A stretch of 64,000 nucleotides of DNA from NCBI GenBank assembly GCA_904063045.1, contig CAJFCJ010000020.1, positions 736,916 through 800,915 of the forward strand, in the 5' to 3' direction. Shown piece after piece: positions 1-12,400 of this stretch. Each line of letters starts with the position of its first letter. Position 1 is the stretch's first letter. The notes below the pieces were generated by a model, which was not told the origin of the DNA, did no database searches, and saw only the letters and a list, made by a program, of their open reading frames with translations. The position numbers and the translations under genes are program-made. This DNA comes from Dimorphilus gyrociliatus (lineage: Eukaryota; Animalia; Annelida).

Positions 1-3000
1 TTTTAAATAAAAAGTAGAAGTATCAGGAGGATTCTGCCCATATAGGGTGCTTAGTGTAGTGACGCCTTTCCCAACAGCTTGAAATTGCTCGTGCAGTAGC
101 GTTAAACACCAAACGCAAACAGCTACGTTTCCAAGGCATAGACAAACTAAATATGACTGTTGAATGTAGCTTTCAACGAGAAAGGCAATGAGAACTTTTG
201 ATTTTACAAGGATTTTCAATGCATTGTAGCACAAGAAGATAAACGTCGCTGCTGCGAAGAAAGTGCAAACTATGAAACGGACAAATAAAATATGGTTATT
301 TCGCCCTATGCACTTGTTTAAGAAGATCTGTCGATGATTAAAGATAAGGGGGAATAATATAACAGATATAGTTCGACATATTAATTAAAAATCGTTATCT
401 TTACACTTACACAGTGGTGATCCATACGCTCCATACATTGGTTGCATAGTCGGCAATGTTTCGTACCAGCCAGCGGTATTAGCTGTGTCGAAAATGCAAA
501 AGAACCTTTGTATAACTTCTCCAAACTATTTAACGTCAGAAAAATATGAAGGAGATTTATATACCTCGCAGTCAGAGCAAAAACTTTCGGGCTTAATAAG
601 TCCCTTAGCTATGTCTAAACAAGTGTAATCCGAACCATCCTCCTTCTGCGCATTCTGCTTCAGTACCCCTAACGAGAGCGATTTTTAAGGTTTCGAATAA
701 TTAATCTCTTTCAGCCCTACTTTACCTGGATCTTTCCAAAGAAGAAAAACGAATGATAAAGCTATGAAAGGAATGGAAATCACAGATCCAGCAGTTAAAA
801 TCGGATACAGAGGTGAGACTACTGGATATACTTTCCAGAAATAGCCGATAATTGTATGTAGAAGACCTCCACCGAACATACCCAGCCTATGAGGATTTGG
901 CCAACCGCAGACATGATTTATCCTTCAGGGAAAAGGAAGAGTAAATTATATTTCAAAATTCTAACCAAATCCTTTTAAAGCTCTCAATCCAAACCTTGCA
1001 TTTTCTCGAGAATAATGGAAGCCTAGGTATCCCATTGCCATCGTTGTGACAAGTCCTTGGGCATGGAGCGCCTCTCCTATAATCACAGCGAAGAAACATA
1101 CTGTCAACATCAAAGCCAACCCCCACCAATACAGTATAGGCCCCCTTACTTTAGCATCTTTCAGAGGCATCTTCATATGGTGTGCTAACAGATTAATAGT
1201 CTCTGTATAGCTGCAGGTGAAGAATCAATTAGGAGTAATATAAATCCAAGATAACTTTATAGTACCAATACGTAAGCATAATCATTTCTTATACATTCGT
1301 ATGTCATGGTCACAATACTATGATTAGAAGAGAGAAAATTGTACATTTTTTAATTAGGCTTTCATGCAGAGACGAAGCTAAACCGTACACGTGATACATC
1401 TACGTGACACCATTATATTCCAGAAAATAACTAAGAGAGGGAACGGAGAGAAAAAACAGATAGACAGATGCTATTTTAGCTTCCACTACAAATTCTTTAG
1501 TTTTATAAATAGTTATATTTACCTAGAACCCAATTGTAAAGGACTTCGACTGTGTTTATTTTTTTAAACAAAAATTTGAATAATTAACAATTAGTCTTTT
1601 ATAAAATTAAACTTATTCTTACGAGCCGGGAACTTTATCCTTAGCATTTTTTGCCATGTCGATCGGCTTAGATCCTTCATTATTAGTTATGTCTAGTAGA
1701 CGAAGACCTCCTTTCTCAAGGATAAGGAAAGCAGCTGTCGATAGACCAACTTGACAGGCAACCTATACGTTAAGACAAATAGGGAAAGGTTCAAGCATCT
1801 ATAAACTTTCGTTTTCTTAAAATAGCTATGTTTTTAATTCTAATTAATTACATGAAGGGGAGTATTTCCGTATTTGTCAGCTGACGATAGATTACTTCTC
1901 TGCAATAAAAAAAGAGAAAAAACCGCTTCATTGTGATATTCCGTCCACCAATAAAAAATGCTGTATACGTACATTATTCTTTAATAAAAACCGCAAGGCG
2001 GGAATATTCCTGCTCGCAACGATGTAATGAAGCGGAGTTAGTCCTTCGTTGCAAGCAGTTTTTGTACAAATTTGATGCATTTCTACTAGATAGTACATTG
2101 CTAACCTACAGAGAAATAGAATTATGGAGATGATTTATACAACACGATTATGAATATTTTTTTCTAAGAATAATTGTGTGGGCTTACACGCTTCCACCAA
2201 TGGCCGCATGGTGCATGACGTTTCTTCCAGTTTTGTCCTTTGCGTGCAGGTCACAACCGCTTTCGATTAAGGAATGCATGCATTCGATGTTTCCTCGCTT
2301 GGCAGCAAAAAATATAGGCGTATGCCCAAAATCGCTTTCCGCGTTTACGTCGCTTCCGTGTTGTATGAAGAGAGCAACCAAGTCACGATCACCTTTCAGA
2401 CATGCCTTATGCAACGGTGTGAGTCCGCCAGGACCTAAACAAAGGATTAACACAATAAAGTTAGAGGATAGCAAAAAGATAGCTTTTTAATATTCCATTG
2501 TAGAAAGAGGTAGATAGAGGGAAGAAAGACCGAATGAGTAAGTAAATTTTGAATGAAGAAGGAAGACGATCAAGACAGTTGAGAACTAGTCAACCTGTCG
2601 TGCAATAAAATAATTTCTGGCCGCCGTCTTTGAAGTTGTTTATTCTTAAGAGCGTTCGAAGTATACGTGATGCGGGAAGAGGATGTACTAGAGAATCTTC
2701 GCCTCCGGCAGGTCAAGACCTCTGCGAAGGCGTTCCGGAAAGTCGTGTTGAACATAGTGTAGATAATTGGATTGGCCAAGCTGGAGAGATAGCCAAGCCA
2801 AACAATTATGGCGACGCCGGTTGGTGAGAAAGAGCAATTAGTCTGACAAACAACAGAGAGTATGTTAACAACGAAGAAAGGCGTCCAAAGAATAACGAAC
2901 ACAGAAAATATTACTCCCAATACTTTAGACGCTTTCTTTTCATTGGAGGCAGTTCTTTTTGACATTATTTCACTTTTCCTTCGCTTGCCAGCTAAAGCTT

Positions 3001-4133
3001 CTTCATCTGAACCTGAACCTATAACCCTACCATGGACGGTCAGTTGATTCCGGCATAGAATTCTCAGGGTTAGCACGTAAGTAACTAGCATTACAGCAAA
3101 TGGAATGTAGAATGCGAAGACGGATCCATATAGCACGAAATCGCGTGACTTTGGTAAGCAGTAGGTTCCATCATAGACAGACGTCGTTCTCATTAGACCT
3201 AAAACGCAGACAGGACTCGATATCGCAATACTAATTAACCAAACAAAAAGGATCTTTGTGAGAACCCACTTGGCGGTTTTATTCCTACCGTACTTCATTG
3301 GATACTTAAGACTAAGCCACCGGTCCAATGACATAGTACACATATGCCATATGGATGCTGTACACATTAGAACATCGGCTGTTAGCCAGACAATACAAAC
3401 GCCTATACCCAACGTCCATTTACCGTCGTACAAGTCAACGGCAGTTCTAAGAGGCATAACTAAAATTGCGACAAACAGATCGGCAACAGATAAAGAAACC
3501 AAAAAATAATTCGTCATATTTTGAAGACGCTTATCTCTATAAACTGCAACGCAGACAAGAATATTCCCTGTACATGTAGCAATAATGACAGTAGTAACAG
3601 CTAAAAGTTCCCAGTTCCGTTTTGATTGTTGGACGGTAACGTTATTGAAGGGCGTCGAAAGATTCTCCATCGCCAGTGTGAGGCCCGAATGCCGATTAAT
3701 GCGGCGTCACGAGTCTAGACGTCGCTGACTGGCGTAGGAGTGTGAAAAAAAAAGTGCTCTTACCTTTGCTATTCACTATAGATGGATCATTTTGGACCAT
3801 TTCATTTATATTCTGAAAACTCATACAATCCACTGCCGCATGAATATCCAGAACATAGCCAACTTTACCATCTTCGTAATGCTGCAGTTTACCACCTGGT
3901 AGCATGGACATAGGGAGTCCTTGATTACCGTGACCCATATTGTTCATTTGAAACTGAACTAATTTTTTAGCAACTGCCTCCTTCTCTTCTATTGACATGT
4001 TAGCAAGCGTGACAGGATCTAACTTGGGCATGTTTCGCTCTGTTGTTTGACATTTGTTCGAGCATGGTATAACATCATTACCGTCTCCAACTCCGGTGCT
4101 CTTTAATGTAGGCTGATCCAGATTCTCCTTCAT
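1..4133 (-). CDS. Ankyrin-repeat DHHC palmitoyltransferase (ZDHHC13/17-like), multi-exon, 3' end runs off the window
   Basis: Exons join in frame: 4133-3764 (...IVNSK G|), 2434-2188 (PGGLTPLHKACLKG...), 2105-1973 (EGLTPLHY), then GNTPLH|VACQVG ankyrin exons, TM exons ending in KDPG (685-1176), FCSDCE|LIPLAGTKHCRLCNQCMERMDHHC (about 560-415) and |IFLNKCIGRNNHILF (about 327-1). Donors and acceptors checked are GT-AG and phase-compatible. Confidence 0.88.
2570..3670 (-). CDS. HTR2: 5-HT2-type serotonin receptor (class A aminergic GPCR), intronless, nested in intron 1 of the DHHC gene
   Basis: 366-aa single ORF with 7 TM segments: GNILVCVAV, LQNMTNYFLVSLSVAD, TM3 Asp in ADVLMCTASIWH, SLDRW, NEKKASKVLG, LWTPFF, WLGYLSSLANPIIY. 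The NWxxL N-terminal, NEKKASKVLG and WLGYLSS motifs match the 5-HT2 subfamily. Confidence 0.85.
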   Translation of the reverse strand: MENLSTPFNNVTVQQSKRNWELLAVTTVIIATCTGNILVCVAVYRDKRLQNMTNYFLVSLSVADLFVAILVMPLRTAVDLYDGKWTLGIGVCIVWLTADVLMCTASIWHMCTMSLDRWLSLKYPMKYGRNKTAKWVLTKILFVWLISIAISSPVCVLGLMRTTSVYDGTYCLPKSRDFVLYGSVFAFYIPFAVMLVTYVLTLRILCRNQLTVHGRVIGSGSDEEALAGKRRKSEIMSKRTASNEKKASKVLGVIFSVFVILWTPFFVVNILSVVCQTNCSFSPTGVAIIVWLGYLSSLANPIIYTMFNTTFRNAFAEVLTCRRRRFSSTSSSRITYTSNALKNKQLQRRRPEIILLHDRLTSSQLS

Positions 4134-4244
4134 TTTTTTTGTTTGCGTAGCGCTTAGATCTTTTATTCAAACCAATACTTTGATTGTAACGACGGCGAAT
4201 TTAATCAAAAAGCAATAATTTACTGACGGTATTCCTATTACAAA

Positions 4245-4252
4245 TGACGTCA
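4245..4252. promoter_or_regulatory. Full CRE palindrome TGACGTCA about 110 nt upstream of the DHHC start codon
   Basis: Exact motif in the putative proximal promoter. About 0.5 copies are expected by chance in 64 kb at this base composition, so support is weak. Confidence 0.3.
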
Positions 4253-6262
4253 AAACGGATTCCCCTTGGAGACGCAAGTTAAACTGTAGAGTATTAATAA
4301 TTAGTTTTTTTCTATACCCCCTATCAGTGTCGGCCTATGGCAGCAATTTCCGATTAACTCGTCTGGAATTCTCAATTTGACAAACTTTAAATGCGTATAT
4401 GTAAAATTTCTCAGCCTATGCTTAAGCTTTTATTACTTTCATGAAGTAACAAACAAATAAAGGCATATCAATACATATAGCTCTCTCAACTCTGCTTCTT
4501 TTTTTTACTATATTAAACACTTATATAAACAATCTTTTTACTATAAACAATATAACTATATAGATAGATAGATATATAGATAGATATAAGATATCTGGTA
4601 TATATTAAATATAAATACATTGAAAAGAGTGCCACGCTAAGAGATAATGAAGAAAGCGACTATTCTGCTTTTGCCGGACGACCGGATATTGAACACGCTT
4701 GTTCCAAAGTAACGAGGTTTTTTACAACTTAGAAAAAAAACTACCTCATAGATTGGTTAATGCATTAAACGGAAAACGCTTAGTAACAACATATTGATGG
4801 AAACGTTATCTACTGCTTAATTAGATAGTGATTGATACAAGAGAAATTAATATACACTTGCCGTAAGTGTTTGGCAATAGGAGGAGGGGCGTCGATTCCT
4901 ATTTATGGGCTCATGTCAAAAGGTTAAATCTTGAAGAAACTGGGTGCTGCCATCTTTCGTTTATGATTGAAAACGCATTTTTTTCGGTTCACTTAAAGTT
5001 AATAAATAAGCGTTGAAAAGAAACTAAACGAACGGAAGTGGGCTGATTTATTGGTTGTTCAGTTAACCGTTTGAAGAATTTATGTATTGTTTTCTAAGCG
5101 GTGTGTGTGTCTCAGACGAAAGGAAAAGGCGTATCAAATTTTATTAGAGGGGAACAAGTAAAAGGGGAAGAGGGGTGTCGGTTTGAACCGGTTTGAAAGC
5201 TGATGGAAAGTCACAAATCTTGTTTTAGGAAAATATCGCGTTAAATAGTAAACAGAGATGTGCATTAATAGCCTAAGGCCACTTGCTAATACATTTTCGG
5301 GTCAGTAGAAAATAGGTCAAAGCGTACTTTTCTTGCATAAAATCTTACATGTTTCGATTTTAATGAGTGTATAAAGCTACACGGAAACATATAACCGATT
5401 TTATCCGCAAAGTACAACTGCCAATACAACATTCTGTTTACAGAACGCGTTCTATCGTATACCACTTGGAAAGTTTTCTAGAAAGAGCGTCCAGGTGACG
5501 CCGTACGTGGCGCCACCGCTATTTTTTTCCCGCGCAAAACTTCATACGACTCACAAAAAACGCGGTAAAAACCTATGAATAATATTTTTTTTAAGTCTGG
5601 AATATTTCGAAATAAGGCGTCATCAACTTACTACCACCGTTGTGTATATCAGTCAAGTTAAAGCTTGTTTCGATCAAACTATATACGATATCCTTTGTAC
5701 TATTTTTTAAAACTATTGTATATTTGCCGCGTTCGAACAAGTCTTGTTCAACAACACTTAAGACTGTATTTCAAAAATATAATATTAGCCAGAAAACTTT
5801 AGTTATAAATACATAAATACATAGATTCGTCTCATTCATCATTCGCATTCATTCTTCGAGACGTATACCATATAAAATATTCAAGTTTCCCAGATATGCA
5901 TAGTTCATAAAAGCTAAAATCCTCTACATTCTTGATAATACATTTATATACAATTACGGCAAACGTAATATGACTTGTCGCAAGAATTCATCAAATAATT
6001 AAACACGCAGGAACAATTGCAGAGAGCACACAAAGTTAAGACATAATGCATCAGTCATATTACGAATTAAAAACCAAAGTATGTAGTATATTACATGCGA
6101 ACACAAATTTCACTATACTTTCAGACTAGTAGTTTACAAGTAAATTAATTAATATTACGCGCTTTTACATCTATAACATCTCCATTATAAAAGGCATTCC
6201 AAGTAAAAAATGATTTGAAAAAAAAACAAAATAAAAATCTCCTGATGGTCGACTAATTCGGC

Positions 6263-7132
6263 TCAAAAAATCTGAGGGAAAAGGGCAGCTTGTTGGGCAG
6301 CCTGTAGAGCGACAAGACGTCTTTGTGCCGCAAGAGCAGCAGCTGCGGCTTGAGGACCTTGATTGAACGGGCAGTGGCTGATTGTATGGGCCCGCTCTCC
6401 GGTTTGTAGACATAGCGGACATCTGTAGTGGAATAAAATGGGACAGGTAATCCTTCCTTCATCGTCCTTCAAGACGTGATTTGTATAGACCCATTCCTCT
6501 TCACCGTTATTCTTGCAAAATCGGCAGTAATTGATCTTGCTGCGTCTTTTCGATATCGGTGTCAGGCCAGCAGCAACTCTTTGCCTTTCTCTATCATATA
6601 GGAAAGCTTTAAACGCCAATTGCGCCATTTCAGGGGTTGGCTCGATACCAGGTGGCAAAAGATTCGTCAATCTGCTCTTCGCCGAATTTTTGGCGCCAAT
6701 TCTTCTATCGAATGGGTCCAATTCCCTTTCGATACCGTTCGACATGAAATCTTGTTGGGCAGCCAAAGCATATGGTTGATTCAGAACAGGTTGTTCAGGA
6801 AATAAAGCCTTTGTCGATTGTACTCTTCTAGCCATTTCTTGCATATCGTTCACCTGGTTCGCTCCATGTAAGCCCATTTGAAAATCAACGCCATTCGACC
6901 AAGTCTCTTTTGGCGGATTAATAAGCGGGAGCGACAGACCACTGTCATTACTATTAGGACGAGGAGATTCTGTTTCGCTGGAACTCGAAGTATTACCAGA
7001 CGAGCCGGCTTCGGAAAGAGTCACTGAAAAAGCAATTGATATCAATATAAATAAACGCAACGTCCGCGCGAAAAAAGGAACTATTAGCACGTGCTCTGAG
7101 TAATATGCAGAATATACGATAAATATATTCAT
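6263..7132 (-). CDS. nanos: Nanos (CCHC)2 zinc-finger translational repressor; true 5' end uncertain
   Basis: YCRFCKNNGEEEWVYTNHVLKDDEGRITCPILFHYRCPLCLQTGERAHTISHCP is the diagnostic nanos domain. The first 36 or so codons of the ORF may be intron or UTR (TTTTCAG acceptor near 7024). Confidence 0.95.
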   Translation of the reverse strand: MNIFIVYSAYYSEHVLIVPFFARTLRLFILISIAFSVTLSEAGSSGNTSSSSETESPRPNSNDSGLSLPLINPPKETWSNGVDFQMGLHGANQVNDMQEMARRVQSTKALFPEQPVLNQPYALAAQQDFMSNGIERELDPFDRRIGAKNSAKSRLTNLLPPGIEPTPEMAQLAFKAFLYDRERQRVAAGLTPISKRRSKINYCRFCKNNGEEEWVYTNHVLKDDEGRITCPILFHYRCPLCLQTGERAHTISHCPFNQGPQAAAAALAAQRRLVALQAAQQAALFPQIF

Positions 7133-7324
7133 ATTACTAATGTACCTGTATTATAATATACATTTAGTCATATTATACTTACAGCTTTGCAGTATATTCG
7201 TTAAATCCATGTTAAAAGCACGAAATTTCAGCAGAGAATTGAAGACTGGCGTACGCTAACGGACATAGTACGATTTTGGCGCTACGGAGCTAGAAATCCC
7301 GCTTTTTTTCGAACTATACGATCG

Positions 7325-7336
7325 CTGATTGGCTGG
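7325..7336 (-). promoter_or_regulatory. CCAAT box (NF-Y-like CCAGCCAATCAG) upstream of nanos
   Basis: Canonical RRCCAATCAG in a CpG-containing patch about 190 nt upstream of the nanos ORF. Confidence 0.3.
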
Positions 7337-9433
7337 CGTGCTTGTTGGGCGACAAAGGGAATTTATTTTTTTAGACTGGTGTCATTCCACTCTGAATAGT
7401 GAAAGTTCACGTTAGGGTTGGGAACTGGTTCCCATCGCGTCTCAACAAAGAAAGCGTCAACAAAGAAGCACCTGCCGGGATGGAAGGCGCGAAAAAGAAT
7501 CAAAATAAGATTTTTGGCGGGAAACAGTTATATAATCAGGTTATCGAAACTGCTGCTTGATAGGGGATGAGTAATAAACTAATAATCCAGAGCATAAATC
7601 TCAAATGAATTTAATAATTATAGGGTGAATCAGCAACAAGCACTTTCTAATTTTCGACAAGGGAAAGTGTTCAATCGTATGACGTCATTGTAATGACTAA
7701 ATGTGTCAGTAATTAGTCGACTCTATTAAATGATCGTAAAGCAATTGGTGAGCACTGCAAAGCCGATTAAAGTACTCAAAATTCAGATTTGTTTTTTAGC
7801 ACGCTGGTCGAAGATAAACGACGAGTGTTTGATTGTTCAAAATGCTTGCGCGTCCATCGACGGGTAATTTATAACATCGAAAACAGACGATGAGTTGTTT
7901 TCCCGCTTTAAATTTCATTAAAAATAGAACGACAGATGCTATACGGGCGGCTATAATTTTCGGTAATTCGCTCTGAAGTCTATGGCACTGACTCAAAAAA
8001 GCAGTTTAATTTTATTCTACTATAAAATCTTTAGGATATGAAAATTGTAAACTAGTTATCGAATTTCACTAGGCCTGTGAATGAAACATAGGAAGTAACA
8101 AAGATAATGTCAGATACGATAACAAGAGAGCAAAATTTCTGATAAAAAAAATATAGCTATAAGTGGTCTACTTGGGTTAATAATAACCATACTACAAATT
8201 TACTTTCTCTGATTCAGTTCAGACGGACTTGTCTATACTACTCAAGTCTATAGCAGAAGGCGCACGGGTCATATTTACCTCTACACTTAGACAGATGGCG
8301 CTATATGCGACAGCGATAATGAAGAAATCGGCGTTCGTGGCTTCAAAAGAAGTAGTCAACTTCAATTGACAATTCGGTGTATTGTTGAAATAACAACTAT
8401 TCGTAAAATGCTTTATTATTCTAGATCGTTGATCTCATTTACTATAAAATTTATCGTTTCTTGATAATAAAAAAAAAAAAAAGCTAATGCCATAAAATTA
8501 TCTTTTCTCATAAAACATAGCAATGAAAAGTATTGGTTTTTCAACTATCTATCGTAGTAATTGACCAATGACACTTAACGCACAGTGTATATAAATATAA
8601 CTCGGACTTAAACAAATTCTACATGCTCATGAGGGCGTATCGTAAGGGTAGAAGGAAATCAAAACTAATAGACATGGTGGTATATTCCTACATTTTTTTT
8701 ATACCTTCTAACAATATCACCTACATAACCTATCATTAAAATTATTTCCCGCCTTTTTTCTCTTTTATAAATACCTATCCCCTTCTCCACTCCCTCTTTA
8801 AGAAAGAATAGAATTATTTTATTTTTAAACAAAATTAACAAAAATCATTCCTATTCTCCCTCCCCTTCCTCTTCTCGGTAATAATAACGAAAAGTTGTAG
8901 CCTTTGTTTGTTTTCGAAGGCAAACGTAAATATACTATATAATATGAAAAGGATACTTTGTTTCTAAACCGTATCCAGTTACTTTGTATAAAATTTAATT
9001 TGTAGCAAACTTTTAGATAAGAAAACTTTTTGAAGTATTTCCTTATCTTATTTTTTTATTTGTTTTTTTCTTTTACTATAAACATATAAAAACACTAATA
9101 AAGTTGTCATATTCATTGTAAAAAAAGGAATGAAAGAAAGAAAATTATTAATAACTCTTCTATTATTCCTTTAATAAATATTTTAAAATAATTGCAATAG
9201 TTAATTTGTGTTTCATTTCATTGTTGAAATAATATATTGAACTGTTATTATTAATAGGTATGTTATTTAGCATTAAAACGCAAAGAGGTCTATTGAGAGA
9301 TAGAAAGAGAGAGAGAGAAGAAGAAGAAATCGATTATAGCCTATAAATAAACAATAAAAGGAATAGTCTAAAAAAAAAGTAAAAGAGGATAAAAATAAAA
9401 GCGAATGGATAAAAATAATCTTAAAAAAAAACG

Positions 9434-12400
9434 TTATGCTCTCTGTAAAGGTAGTCCGTATATTACCGGTGAAGCTCCTGTCAAATATTTTAGATTGCAA
9501 TTCTCTCTCGCTTCATTACATATAAAGGGCACAAACTCTCCTCTTTCAGCTAAACTGATAGACCTTATCTGTTCTTTCGTAAACAAATCGATATCCTTAT
9601 CCGTTACTTTCCACATATTGCCCATAATGCTCGAACTGGAATTAGAACAAATAAACAGTATGCATAAGGAAAATTTGATATTTACCAGCCACTGCTAAGA
9701 TAGTTCAAGACAGTTCGACCGCTGGCGTCGAACTCTCCTTCAGTGGTTAATTGAACGCTGCTGCAGCCCATTAAAATAGCCATTGATTTCGTTTTCAGGC
9801 GATATAGTTCCTCTTTAGAGAAACATTGACTGCCGGATCCATGTCCGGCATACAGAAAGATATCTTTGCATTCTAATTCCCTCTTTAATTCTTCCCAAAT
9901 TGGTAATTTACCACTTGCGCCATTCCAACCCAAACTTTTTAAAAAGGGTACTAAATTTTCTTGAGATTCTGTTAGAGTATCGTCTGGATCAACGATATAA
10001 TATGCATTATCGAATTGTACAGGTTCCTTATTCATCAAGTTGTAATGCTGAAGTACGCAGTTAATTGATGGCATTCGATAAACTTTGATTGAATCTCTAC
10101 AAAAAGGCATATTTTCGAAAGGAATATGCTGTAGTTGCTGCAGTTGTTTTCAATGATTAATTATTAGTTTGTTTATTATTATCATTTGCAGACATTACCC
10201 TATCTACTATCAAAATTAAAGGTTTATCAGACGAAACAGAAATATCCATTTCCAGAAGGGAATCTACAAATTTCCCATTATCTACGCATAAATCGTTGTA
10301 CTCGCAGTAAACATCAATTAACCAACTTAATTTGGTTCTCGTCAAATAACTAGAGCCGTTCATTAAAACCTAATAAGAATCAATAGTTAAATTAAAATTG
10401 AAAACATTTAATATGCACATGTTAGAATGAGATTAATTAATTAATTATTAACCATTATGAAAGGAACATGGTTTATCAGATGAAACTCTGTCGCTAGTTT
10501 TCGTGCATTTTCTTCCAATTGTTTATTACTGATTTCATTCAAAGGGAAAGGCTTTATGAATATTTTCACCGAACCAAATAAGAACTCCTCTAAACTTTCT
10601 AAAATAATCTGGGGGAGAGGTTGAGAGGAGGGGAAAGGAAAACAAAGAATTGAGTTTTATATAACATTTGTAAGTAACACTTTCGATTCTCTTTAAAAAC
10701 CTTTACTTCTTCGTCCAACTTCCGCCGAGTCTTCCAAAAAGAATCCTTATCAGTTAAAGTAGTAGAATAATCTATTTCTTTTATAAGGTATTTAAATCTC
10801 TCCAGTTTCTTTTGACACTATTCAATAAATTATTAAATAAATGAATGGATAGATCTGTGTAATTGTTCATAATTACCTCTTTCTGTTCGAATCCGCCTAT
10901 TGGTATGATAATTGGTCGACAACCATTGTGATAACGAGTTAAAAATAATCTCTTACTTGATTTAGTAGATGCTTGAGCGACGCTTAATTGACAAATACAG
11001 TAATCTGTAAACAATTTAGTTGGTTTCTTTGTTTACAAAGATTGATAAGAGAGGAGCGGGAGGAGAGAGAGAAAGAGAGAGAGAGAACTAACCTTTGGGA
11101 AGGTTTTGAATAAGGTCTTTGTGATCTTCAAGAGTCTTTCCGAATTTTGTAAACCTTAGGCTATTTAGATAATCTTCCGTTTGGAATCTGAAAGTTAAGC
11201 AGCTGTCAGTATCGCATTCCCCTCCACTTCCATTCGAATATGAAAGAATAACTTTACAATAACTAGTCGATTAATTCTTTAGTTAAATGTTTTTTAATCA
11301 CTTTCATCACTATACCACTATTATTCGTTGTACTTAAAACATTACATAACTGGATTATTTTTTCAATAATCCGATAGAAAAAAAAATAGATAAGCCAAGT
11401 ATGTTGAATAATAATAATAATCTCTTTCTTATTGGTAGGTAAAGTAATACTAACTTGAATTTCTTTGCCATTACGGAAGATAAGAAATGTCTATAAGAAA
11501 TACTATGGATCTCTGATAAAAAGAAGCTTTTTTCAAGATCATTTTCAGATAATAGGGCTAGCGCACTACAAACATATCGATACAGCACAATATTAGGTTC
11601 AATTTTAATTAAATTGAATAATTTAGTAAGAATATTCTTTGCCTTCTCCTGTTCTGAATATAGGATAGCTGAAAAAGCGAACGAAAAGTCAAAGAAAGTT
11701 ATCTTAATAGTTGGAAATGGCCTGAGGGCTACAGCCAGAAATTTTCTTATTTTGTACCGTTTTTAGAAGAATCTGTAACCGATATGGTAGTTTCAGGTGA
11801 CGTTTCCAGAACATCGTCTGTCAAATCTGATTCACTCCGGGCTTTTTCAGGGTCCTTATCGTGTTTCATTGGCTGACTCTTGTCCTATAAAAATAATTTA
11901 CATTAACACTTGCTTATTTTTATTTCTTTGATTTTGCTTAAGTAGTTTCGTTTTTTTTAATAAACAACCTCTTTAAAGTTTTGTAGACGGCGTCTCTTTC
12001 TTTCACTCTGTTTTTTCTTGTATCCCAAAATAGGACTAGGAAGAAAATCGTCATTATCTAAATCGACGTTAAAAGTCATTTCCTCCTTTATTTCTCTTTT
12101 CATATTACACGTAACCTTTTCGATTCTATCTAGATTTGTTGTTTTCGGTGTTCTAGGTCGTTTTGGTTGTGCATTGGTTCTCAATCTGTTAAGCGTTGGT
12201 GATAAAAGTCGTTTGAAGTTTTCTTCTTTTATTATATTTCTCTCCAGTGTCTCTATTCTCAGGGGTTTTAATTCCGGGAACACTGCAATTGCCTTATAAT
12301 ATAACGCTTCCCCTTCGTATTCATTACATAGCAGAAAGGTATATTTTTGAAGTTTGACTAGCTTCTCTGTTCTACGTATATAACTTTTAAAGCGTTTTGC

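Follow-up and report, generated by a model that had tools for sequence, protein, structure and literature searches.

The stretch of DNA analysed here (the window) comprises 64,000 nt of the genome of the annelid Dimorphilus gyrociliatus (assembly GCA_904063045.1, contig CAJFCJ010000020.1, positions 736,916–800,915). Near its start is a complete, intronless gene for a 5-HT2-type serotonin receptor, located within the first intron of a gene for an ankyrin-DHHC palmitoyltransferase, with host and receptor both on the minus strand. This structural reading, a sense-nested 5-HT2-type gene in intron 1 of an ankyrin-DHHC gene, is well supported by comparative evidence. A fuller interpretation – that a functional single-exon 5-HT2-type gene lies in sense in the phase-1 intron 1 of a HIP14/ZDHHC17-like gene and forms an independent transcription unit – is probably correct. 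Comparison with a sister species shows that neither coding unit is disrupted and that purifying selection acts on both.

The receptor gene and the enclosing intron

Intron 1 of the host gene extends from 3763 to 2435 (1329 nt, GT...AG, phase 1) and encloses the complete receptor gene. The receptor coding sequence (CDS; 3670–2570, minus strand) is a single open reading frame (ORF) of 1101 nt including the stop, 366 codons followed by TGA. It fills 83% of the intron, with 93 nt left 5’ of the ATG and 135 nt left 3’ of the stop. The receptor thus lies wholly between the donor and the acceptor of one host intron, as an intronic same-strand nested gene does. The exon 1 donor reads AAAG/GTAAGA, and the exon 2 acceptor, at 2434, reads TTGTTTAG/GTCCTGGC (a slash marks the splice site). 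Exon 1 ends in phase 1, which is the phase that exon 2 requires, in keeping with the in-frame splice proposed in an initial annotation of this DNA; the coordinates given there, the lengths (1329, 1101, 93 and 135 nt) and the junctions (AAAG/GTAAG and TTTAG/GTCCTGGC) were all correct. From first to last, the nine host introns are 1329, 82, 73, 89, 412, 72, 57, 82 and 83 nt long, in a genome in which the median intron is 66 bp (PMC7854359). The other host introns are short, as had been claimed, at 57–89 nt, save one of 412 nt.

The gene order on the minus strand is nanos, host exon 1, the receptor ORF and nine more short exons that encode ankyrin repeats, transmembrane segments and the DHHC domain, followed by a convergent RasGEF gene. 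The same order (nanos – exon 1 – receptor – ankyrin – DHHC – RasGEF) is found in the sister species, for which Logan assemblies from at least five runs were used (L009, L010, L013–L015; ca. 84% nucleotide identity), and there too the receptor is in the same host intron. All ten host exons are open in the handed-on phase in both species, every GT/AG is kept, and the exons match in length but for exon 1, where the species differ by a single in-frame indel of 3 nt. At synonymous sites the two have diverged by ca. 0.5–0.7, and unconstrained DNA aligns at 32–60%.

An intron of this length is unusual where the median is 66 bp, which would suit an artefact: either a misassembly or a dead retrocopy with a frame still open by chance. 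Misassembly, which the initial annotation had named as a danger to its reading, is excluded by the identical gene order in the independent short-read assemblies of the sister species. Against a dead retrocopy, the 366 codons of the receptor are open in both species, and its ratio of non-synonymous to synonymous substitution (dN/dS) is 0.021 at a dS of 0.46, with 98.4% amino acid identity. By this measure the receptor is under very strong constraint, and an artefact of either kind is hardly conceivable.

The receptor has a full rhodopsin-type domain (Pfam 7tm_1, model positions 1–260 of 260, E 1.8e-60). Its best 29 matches in PDB are all to 5-HT2A, 5-HT2C or 5-HT2B receptors (231–259 bits, E 7e-76 to 2e-67), and the first match to a class other than 5-HT2 is to a D2 receptor (198 bits, E 2.5e-57). 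The best named relatives are 5-HT2 receptors of molluscs and arthropods, with 40–60% identity over the helices. Assigned by best matches, the receptor is nearer to 5-HT2 than to other amine receptor classes, by ca. 50 bits. The amine-binding aspartate D3.32 is present, with TADVL of the receptor aligned to YLDVL of 5-HT2A, and FVILWTPFF and NPIIY align with the 5-HT2A motifs, with W6.48, F6.51/F6.52 and NPxxY kept. At the end of helix 3 there is DRW instead of DRY in both species, with the Asp and the Arg retained. The product is a predicted serotonin receptor of the 5-HT2 type, and the Pfam and PDB matches and the layout in the sister species bear out the earlier claim that intron 1 of an ankyrin-DHHC gene harbours a complete 5-HT2-like ORF in the same orientation.

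Relative to other bilaterian 5-HT2 receptors (human 5-HT2A/2B/2C, mollusc and insect), the seven-helix core with these residues is alike. The Dimorphilus receptor differs from them in its length (366 aa vs. 450–640), in its lack of introns and in having DRW for DRY; it is shorter because its third intracellular loop, which is very short, and its termini are minimal. By similarity search it is the sole 5-HT2-type gene of the D. gyrociliatus genome. The next-best genomic matches are 37% identical and are 5-HT7/1-like and octopamine-beta-like. These two next-closest amine receptors, of 344 and 396 aa (L002 1477–2511 and L003 1354–2544), are likewise each encoded by one short ORF, and amine receptor genes in this genome are as a rule compact and intronless.

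The host gene and its first exon

The ten-exon model of the host was built by reading the sequence and then checked against the sister species; exons were searched singly, and the continuity of the frame was judged by exon phase. Exon 1 (4133–3764, minus strand, as are all the others) has 370 nt, begins with the ATG at 4133 and ends in phase 1 after 123 codons plus 1 nt. Exon 2 (2434–2188) encodes ankyrin repeats (Pfam Ank_4, E 1e-20; Ank, E 1.5e-16), starts in phase 1 and ends in phase 2. Exons 3–6 (2105–1973, 1899–1852, 1762–1623 and 1210–995) and exons 7–10 (922–726, 668–565, 482–411 and 327–1) are open in chained phase, and the CDS continues for 57 nt past the start of the window to a TAA, for a predicted protein of ca. 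637 aa. Exon 3 is weakly ankyrin (Pfam Ank_2/Ank_3 at 2.5e-4), exon 9 encodes ...MDHHC (CNQCMERMDHHC), and the last exon matches Pfam DHHC with 34.5 bits (cut-off 28.7; E 2.4e-8). The nine exons that follow the first carry ankyrin repeats, transmembrane stretches and the DHHC domain in one chained open frame. With ankyrin matches in exons 2 and 3 and a DHHC match above the cut-off in the last, the initial description of the host as an ankyrin-DHHC gene holds.

The domain architecture suggests that the host is HIP14/ZDHHC17-like. As in HIP14/ZDHHC17, ZDHHC13 and Akr1, there are N-terminal ankyrin repeats, transmembrane segments and a DHHC cysteine-rich domain in a protein of ca. 637 aa. Unlike these proteins, the host is divergent, with DHHC then IFLNKCIGRNNH, and its N-terminal 90 residues are without relatives.

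Intron 5 (1622–1211, 412 nt) is the only other long intron of the host. It has an 86% conserved block at 1381–1430, in which a CACGTG E-box (1393–1388) adjoins TCACGTAG (1407–1400). This block is likely to be an intronic regulatory element.

Whether the receptor is nested depends on whether exon 1 belongs to the host. In frame, the two halves of exon 1 have a dN/dS of 0.23 and 0.13, compared with 0.84–1.3 in the wrong frames. Host exons 2 and 3 have a dN/dS of ca. 0.16 (exon 2: 0.157), a pace like that of exon 1 and far from that of the receptor. The exon 1 frame is open in both species, where its only indel is the in-frame one of 3 nt. Its donor is kept in the sister species, and within the ten bases after it is a frame-breaking 2-nt indel; the ORF that would read through the donor therefore ends differently in the two species (145 vs. 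177 aa). In this comparison, coding constraint ends exactly at the exon 1 donor. The frame of exon 2 has no ATG between the upstream stop (2477–2475) and codon 47 in D. gyrociliatus and, without a usable start in exon 2, the host needs a coding exon upstream. The initial annotation had considered a start of the ankyrin gene inside 2435–2570; in D. gyrociliatus there is no in-frame ATG there after the stop at 2477–2475.

It had also been claimed that the splice rebuilds an ankyrin repeat. The spacing expected of one is visible by eye, with an ankyrin-like periodicity across the junction (...LDIHAAV...SIVNSKG/PGGLTPLH), 34 residues from His to His and the pattern SxVN...G.TPLH, and the last ca. 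35 residues of exon 1 look like a degenerate first repeat. The claim is upheld as to spacing and not by domain searches: the tail of exon 1 alone matches no Pfam ankyrin model and no PDB chain.

This last result is one of several observations that weigh against membership of exon 1 in the host. Exon 1 as a whole has no homologue except the ORF of the sister species, by phmmer against 1.84 billion representatives, by word search, or in PDB, Pfam and the ESM Atlas; one further match was a chance similarity to a repeat protein. No protein in the searched public collections joins exon 1 to the ankyrin-DHHC part, and no transcript-derived contig or protein in them spans the junction of exons 1 and 2. 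The Logan contigs with the sister ORFs are all colinear with genomic DNA: they are unspliced, with intron 2 included. Exact copies of the ORFs of the receptor, nanos and exon 1 are missing from the public protein collections that were searched, while the neighbouring RasGEF is present (CAD5124123.1). The public annotation therefore probably omits both the receptor and exon 1, and the published host model probably does not use exon 1. Finally, codon 4 of exon 2 is an in-frame ATG in the sister species (PGGMIPLH vs. PGGLTPLH; L009, ca. 11086–11100), where it would make an alternative host start 3’ of the receptor possible.

A gene model that accommodates these points is one in which 4133–3764 is a separate small gene or is translated as the leader of the receptor transcript. 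The ankyrin-DHHC gene would then begin no earlier than exon 2, with the receptor as its un-nested upstream neighbour. Such a model would be consistent with the absence of database proteins that couple exon 1 to ankyrin-DHHC sequence, with an exon 1 that has neither homologues beyond the sister ORF nor a recognisable domain, and with the ATG at codon 4 in the sister species. It is at odds with the D. gyrociliatus sequence, in which a start at codon 47 would remove the first ankyrin repeats. It is also at odds with the retention of the donor and its phase where the end of the ORF is not retained, with a rate of evolution that fits the host exons and not the receptor, and with the conserved acceptor of exon 2, which demands an exon upstream. 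A separate exon 1 is thus improbable. The comparative evidence favours an exon 1 that is part of the host and a predicted junction of exons 1 and 2, in which case exon 1 would encode a lineage-specific N-terminal region.

Flanking sequences and expression of the two genes

The leader between the host donor and the receptor ATG (3763–3671, minus strand, 93 nt) is 91% identical to that of the sister species, with 100% identity over 3708–3659; by comparison, the 3’ flank of the receptor is 66% and host intron 2 is 68% identical. At 3754–3725 of the leader, a T9 run and a pyrimidine tract lead up to CAG/TCAG; two TGACG-like motifs are also present, and the leader lacks an ATG. Between 4133 and 3790 the ATG triplet occurs 18 times, but it is absent from 3790 to the start of the receptor, so that translation by scanning needs a 5’ end or a splice acceptor after 3790. 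The Kozak context of the receptor ATG is good. The leader is presumed to act as the core promoter and 5’ untranslated region (UTR) of the receptor; alternatively, it may hold a 3’ splice site or be a U-rich element that enhances use of the host donor. Its predicted RNA fold has a z-score of -2.2, which indicates no stable structure.

In the 135 nt that separate the stop of the receptor from the host acceptor (2569–2435, minus strand), ATTAAA at 2491–2486 is the only standard poly(A) hexamer. A GU-rich TGTGTT (2454–2449) overlaps the signals for host splicing, a branch-point-like CTAAC (2464–2460) and the pyrimidine tract.

From these features, the receptor would be its own transcription unit. 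Its 5’ end would be in the conserved leader 3’ of the host donor and, as the leader has no ATG, the AUG of the receptor itself would be the first. Its 3’ end would be at the weak ATTAAA/A-rich signal, ca. 80 nt after the stop and ca. 50 nt before the host acceptor. An independent receptor transcript is suggested by the conserved ATG-free leader, the distribution of ATGs, the Kozak context, and the combination of ATTAAA with a GU-rich element.

Host transcripts would start 5’ of 4133 and must therefore run through the receptor. That host pre-mRNA includes the whole receptor ORF, as the initial annotation held, follows from the geometry. In these transcripts the weak poly(A) signal of the receptor would go unused, and the whole unit would be removed when exon 1 is spliced to exon 2. 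The two products may also share or compete for transcription, which the initial annotation had stated as a necessity. The U1 small nuclear ribonucleoprotein at a 5’ splice site suppresses intronic polyadenylation. Only host transcripts would contain the donor of exon 1, so that RNA with the donor would be spliced and RNA starting after the donor would be polyadenylated. A rule of this kind, based on U1, is plausible. Nested genes and intronic promoters are tied to premature polyadenylation of the host (PMC3192792, PMC11694760).

Two features of the flanks fit this scheme less well. The poly(A) hexamer is not conserved as such: AAGAAA and an A11 run stand at the homologous place in the sister species, and use of ATTAAA as the poly(A) site of the receptor is a prediction from the D. 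gyrociliatus sequence. In the leader, the conserved tract 3754–3729 with its CAG resembles a 3’ splice site at least as much as a promoter.

The latter feature leads to the main alternative, a shared promoter (ca. 4250–4200) of the type known from the cholinergic locus. A non-coding 5’ exon would be spliced to 3730/3726, skipping the CDS of exon 1, and the transcript would be polyadenylated within the intron to give receptor mRNA; the enzyme mRNA would come from the splice of exon 1 to exon 2. An example of a donor for the non-coding exon is near AAA/GTATTG (ca. 4180). The tract 3754–3729 (T9, pyrimidines, CAG/TCAG) is almost perfectly conserved and looks like the 3’ splice sites of the host itself, and the block upstream of the host, 4354–4134, is conserved throughout. 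VAChT/ChAT, which has the same geometry, uses multiple promoters and alternative splicing for both genes (PMC3053374). However, no donor upstream of the host ATG stands out, the candidate being weak and unsupported, and a U-rich tract that directly follows a 5’ splice site would suit a core promoter or a splicing enhancer as well. A shared promoter is therefore considered unlikely.

Also unlikely is a locus that acts as a coupled two-product unit, in which the choice of start site would set whether the receptor is spliced out or polyadenylated. If this were true, the output of palmitoyltransferase and serotonin receptor would be reciprocally or jointly controlled. The receptor has Cys321 after helix 8, predicted to be the usual palmitoylatable position, and the pair could therefore be an enzyme–substrate locus, in logic like the cholinergic locus.

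Other ways of expressing the receptor were set aside. Trans-splicing and operons are reported to be absent in D. gyrociliatus (PMC7854359), which removes spliced-leader trans-splicing and operon models. Fusion of exon 1 to the receptor by a mini-intron, from 3764 to an AG at 3729, 3725 or 3715, meets stops within 2–9 codons in all frames, and is also barred by an in-frame TGA (3709–3707) before the receptor ATG. Fusion of the receptor to the enzyme, from the donor-like CAG/GTTGAC at 2595 to the acceptor of exon 2, is out of phase and results in an immediate stop.

Returning to the reading with two transcription units, the block upstream of the host ATG (4354–4134, minus strand, 82–94% identical in the sister species) would hold the host promoter and 5’UTR. 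A perfect palindrome of the cyclic AMP response element, TGACGTCA, is located at 4252–4245, ca. 115 nt upstream of the host ATG, and is kept in the sister species. Farther upstream, an AT-rich spacer that is poorly conserved has a (TATC/TATA)n microsatellite at 4560–4610, where the sister species is unaligned. Between nanos and the host promoter are two conserved non-coding blocks (5480–5231 and 5126–4977, 84–92% identity), which may serve as enhancers or belong to the host or the receptor as non-coding exons. Positions 1–8000 of the window contain no Rfam families.

After the stop of the nanos gene (7132–6263, minus strand; Pfam zf-nanos, E 7e-22), ca. 550 nt (6206–5715) match the sister species at 84–98%, far more than the 35–60% of neutral sequence, and are probably a regulatory 3’UTR under strong constraint. 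The RasGEF gene is located just outside the window start (L011:8347–9771), is convergent with the host and has an ORF identical to CAD5124123.1. Its stop and the stop of the host DHHC gene are 168 nt apart (L011 9774–9945, also just outside the window start), so the 3’UTRs of the two genes are very short or overlap in antisense.

Origin of the nesting and comparison with known systems

The orthologues of the receptor in the other annelid and the two bivalves examined have a different structure. In Capitella, the 5-HT2 orthologue has an intron of >5 kb at residue ca. 81 and is split again around a long third loop, and no Ank/DHHC gene was found within 10 kb of it. In the oyster (Saccostrea) and the clam (Mercenaria), the 5-HT2 genes span 9.4 and 29.5 kb, again with no enclosing gene. 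The synteny seen in the sister species thus does not extend to these three, in none of which does an Ank/DHHC gene enclose the receptor. As the genes of Capitella and the two bivalves are intron-bearing and un-nested, it was in the Dimorphilus lineage that the receptor became nested and intronless.

In that lineage, the receptor would have lost the introns of its orthologues and shortened its third intracellular loop. It would have become nested either by retroposition into an existing intron or by the host gaining a new exon upstream of a neighbouring receptor. As in a retrogene, the introns of the orthologues are absent from the receptor, which is one ORF. Pointing the other way, there is no target-site duplication, nor any shared word of at least 8 nt between the two flanks, and an A11 run that would be a candidate for a poly(A) remnant is seen only in the sister species. 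No intron-bearing parental copy was found in the genome, where the next matches, 37% identical, are of other receptor classes. An origin as an orphan retrogene fits these data; stepwise loss of introns fits equally well, since other amine receptors are also single-ORF genes. Gain of an upstream exon by the host fits the lack of exon 1 homologues beyond the sister species. Orphan retrogenes (PMC3548309) resemble this locus in having an intronless CDS, no intron-bearing paralogue left and a position in the intron of another gene; unlike them, the Dimorphilus locus has no target-site duplication, and an A-run is found only in the sister species.

Same-strand nesting is already well known, and what is unusual here is only the tight packing and the evolutionary youth of the arrangement. 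In this respect the framing of the initial annotation, that nested genes are usually antisense, does not hold: the frequencies of the two orientations in mouse and human are “broadly similar”, with only a slight antisense bias (PMC11694760). For the published genome, the analysis adds a gene that is probably unannotated, the sole 5-HT2-type receptor of D. gyrociliatus. More generally, the locus is a tight, young same-strand nesting in a compact genome without trans-splicing. It reveals no new mechanism by itself and is a test case for gene nesting during genome compaction, as well as a natural one for how two sense transcripts of one stretch of DNA are sorted between the spliceosome and the machinery of cleavage and polyadenylation.

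The closest known parallel in layout is VAChT, a single-exon ORF on the same strand in the first intron of ChAT (PMC3053374; unc-17/cha-1 in nematodes). In both cases a membrane protein of neurotransmission is encoded by one exon, in sense, within the first intron of a gene for an enzyme. The products of VAChT and ChAT share one pathway, their layout is conserved between nematodes and mammals, and 5’ exons and promoters used by both genes have been documented. The Dimorphilus pair, in contrast, is a serotonin receptor and a palmitoyltransferase, the first exon of its host is coding, and its layout is confined to the Dimorphilus lineage, being absent from Capitella and the two bivalves.

Nested genes in mouse and human prefer long, 5’-most introns, with both orientations about equally common (PMC11694760). 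The Dimorphilus locus is like other animal host/nested pairs in that a complete gene is located in a long 5’ intron of its host. It is unlike them in the extreme packing of that intron: the receptor ORF occupies 83% of it, the ATG comes 93 nt after the host donor, and ca. 50 nt separate the presumed poly(A) signal from the host acceptor.

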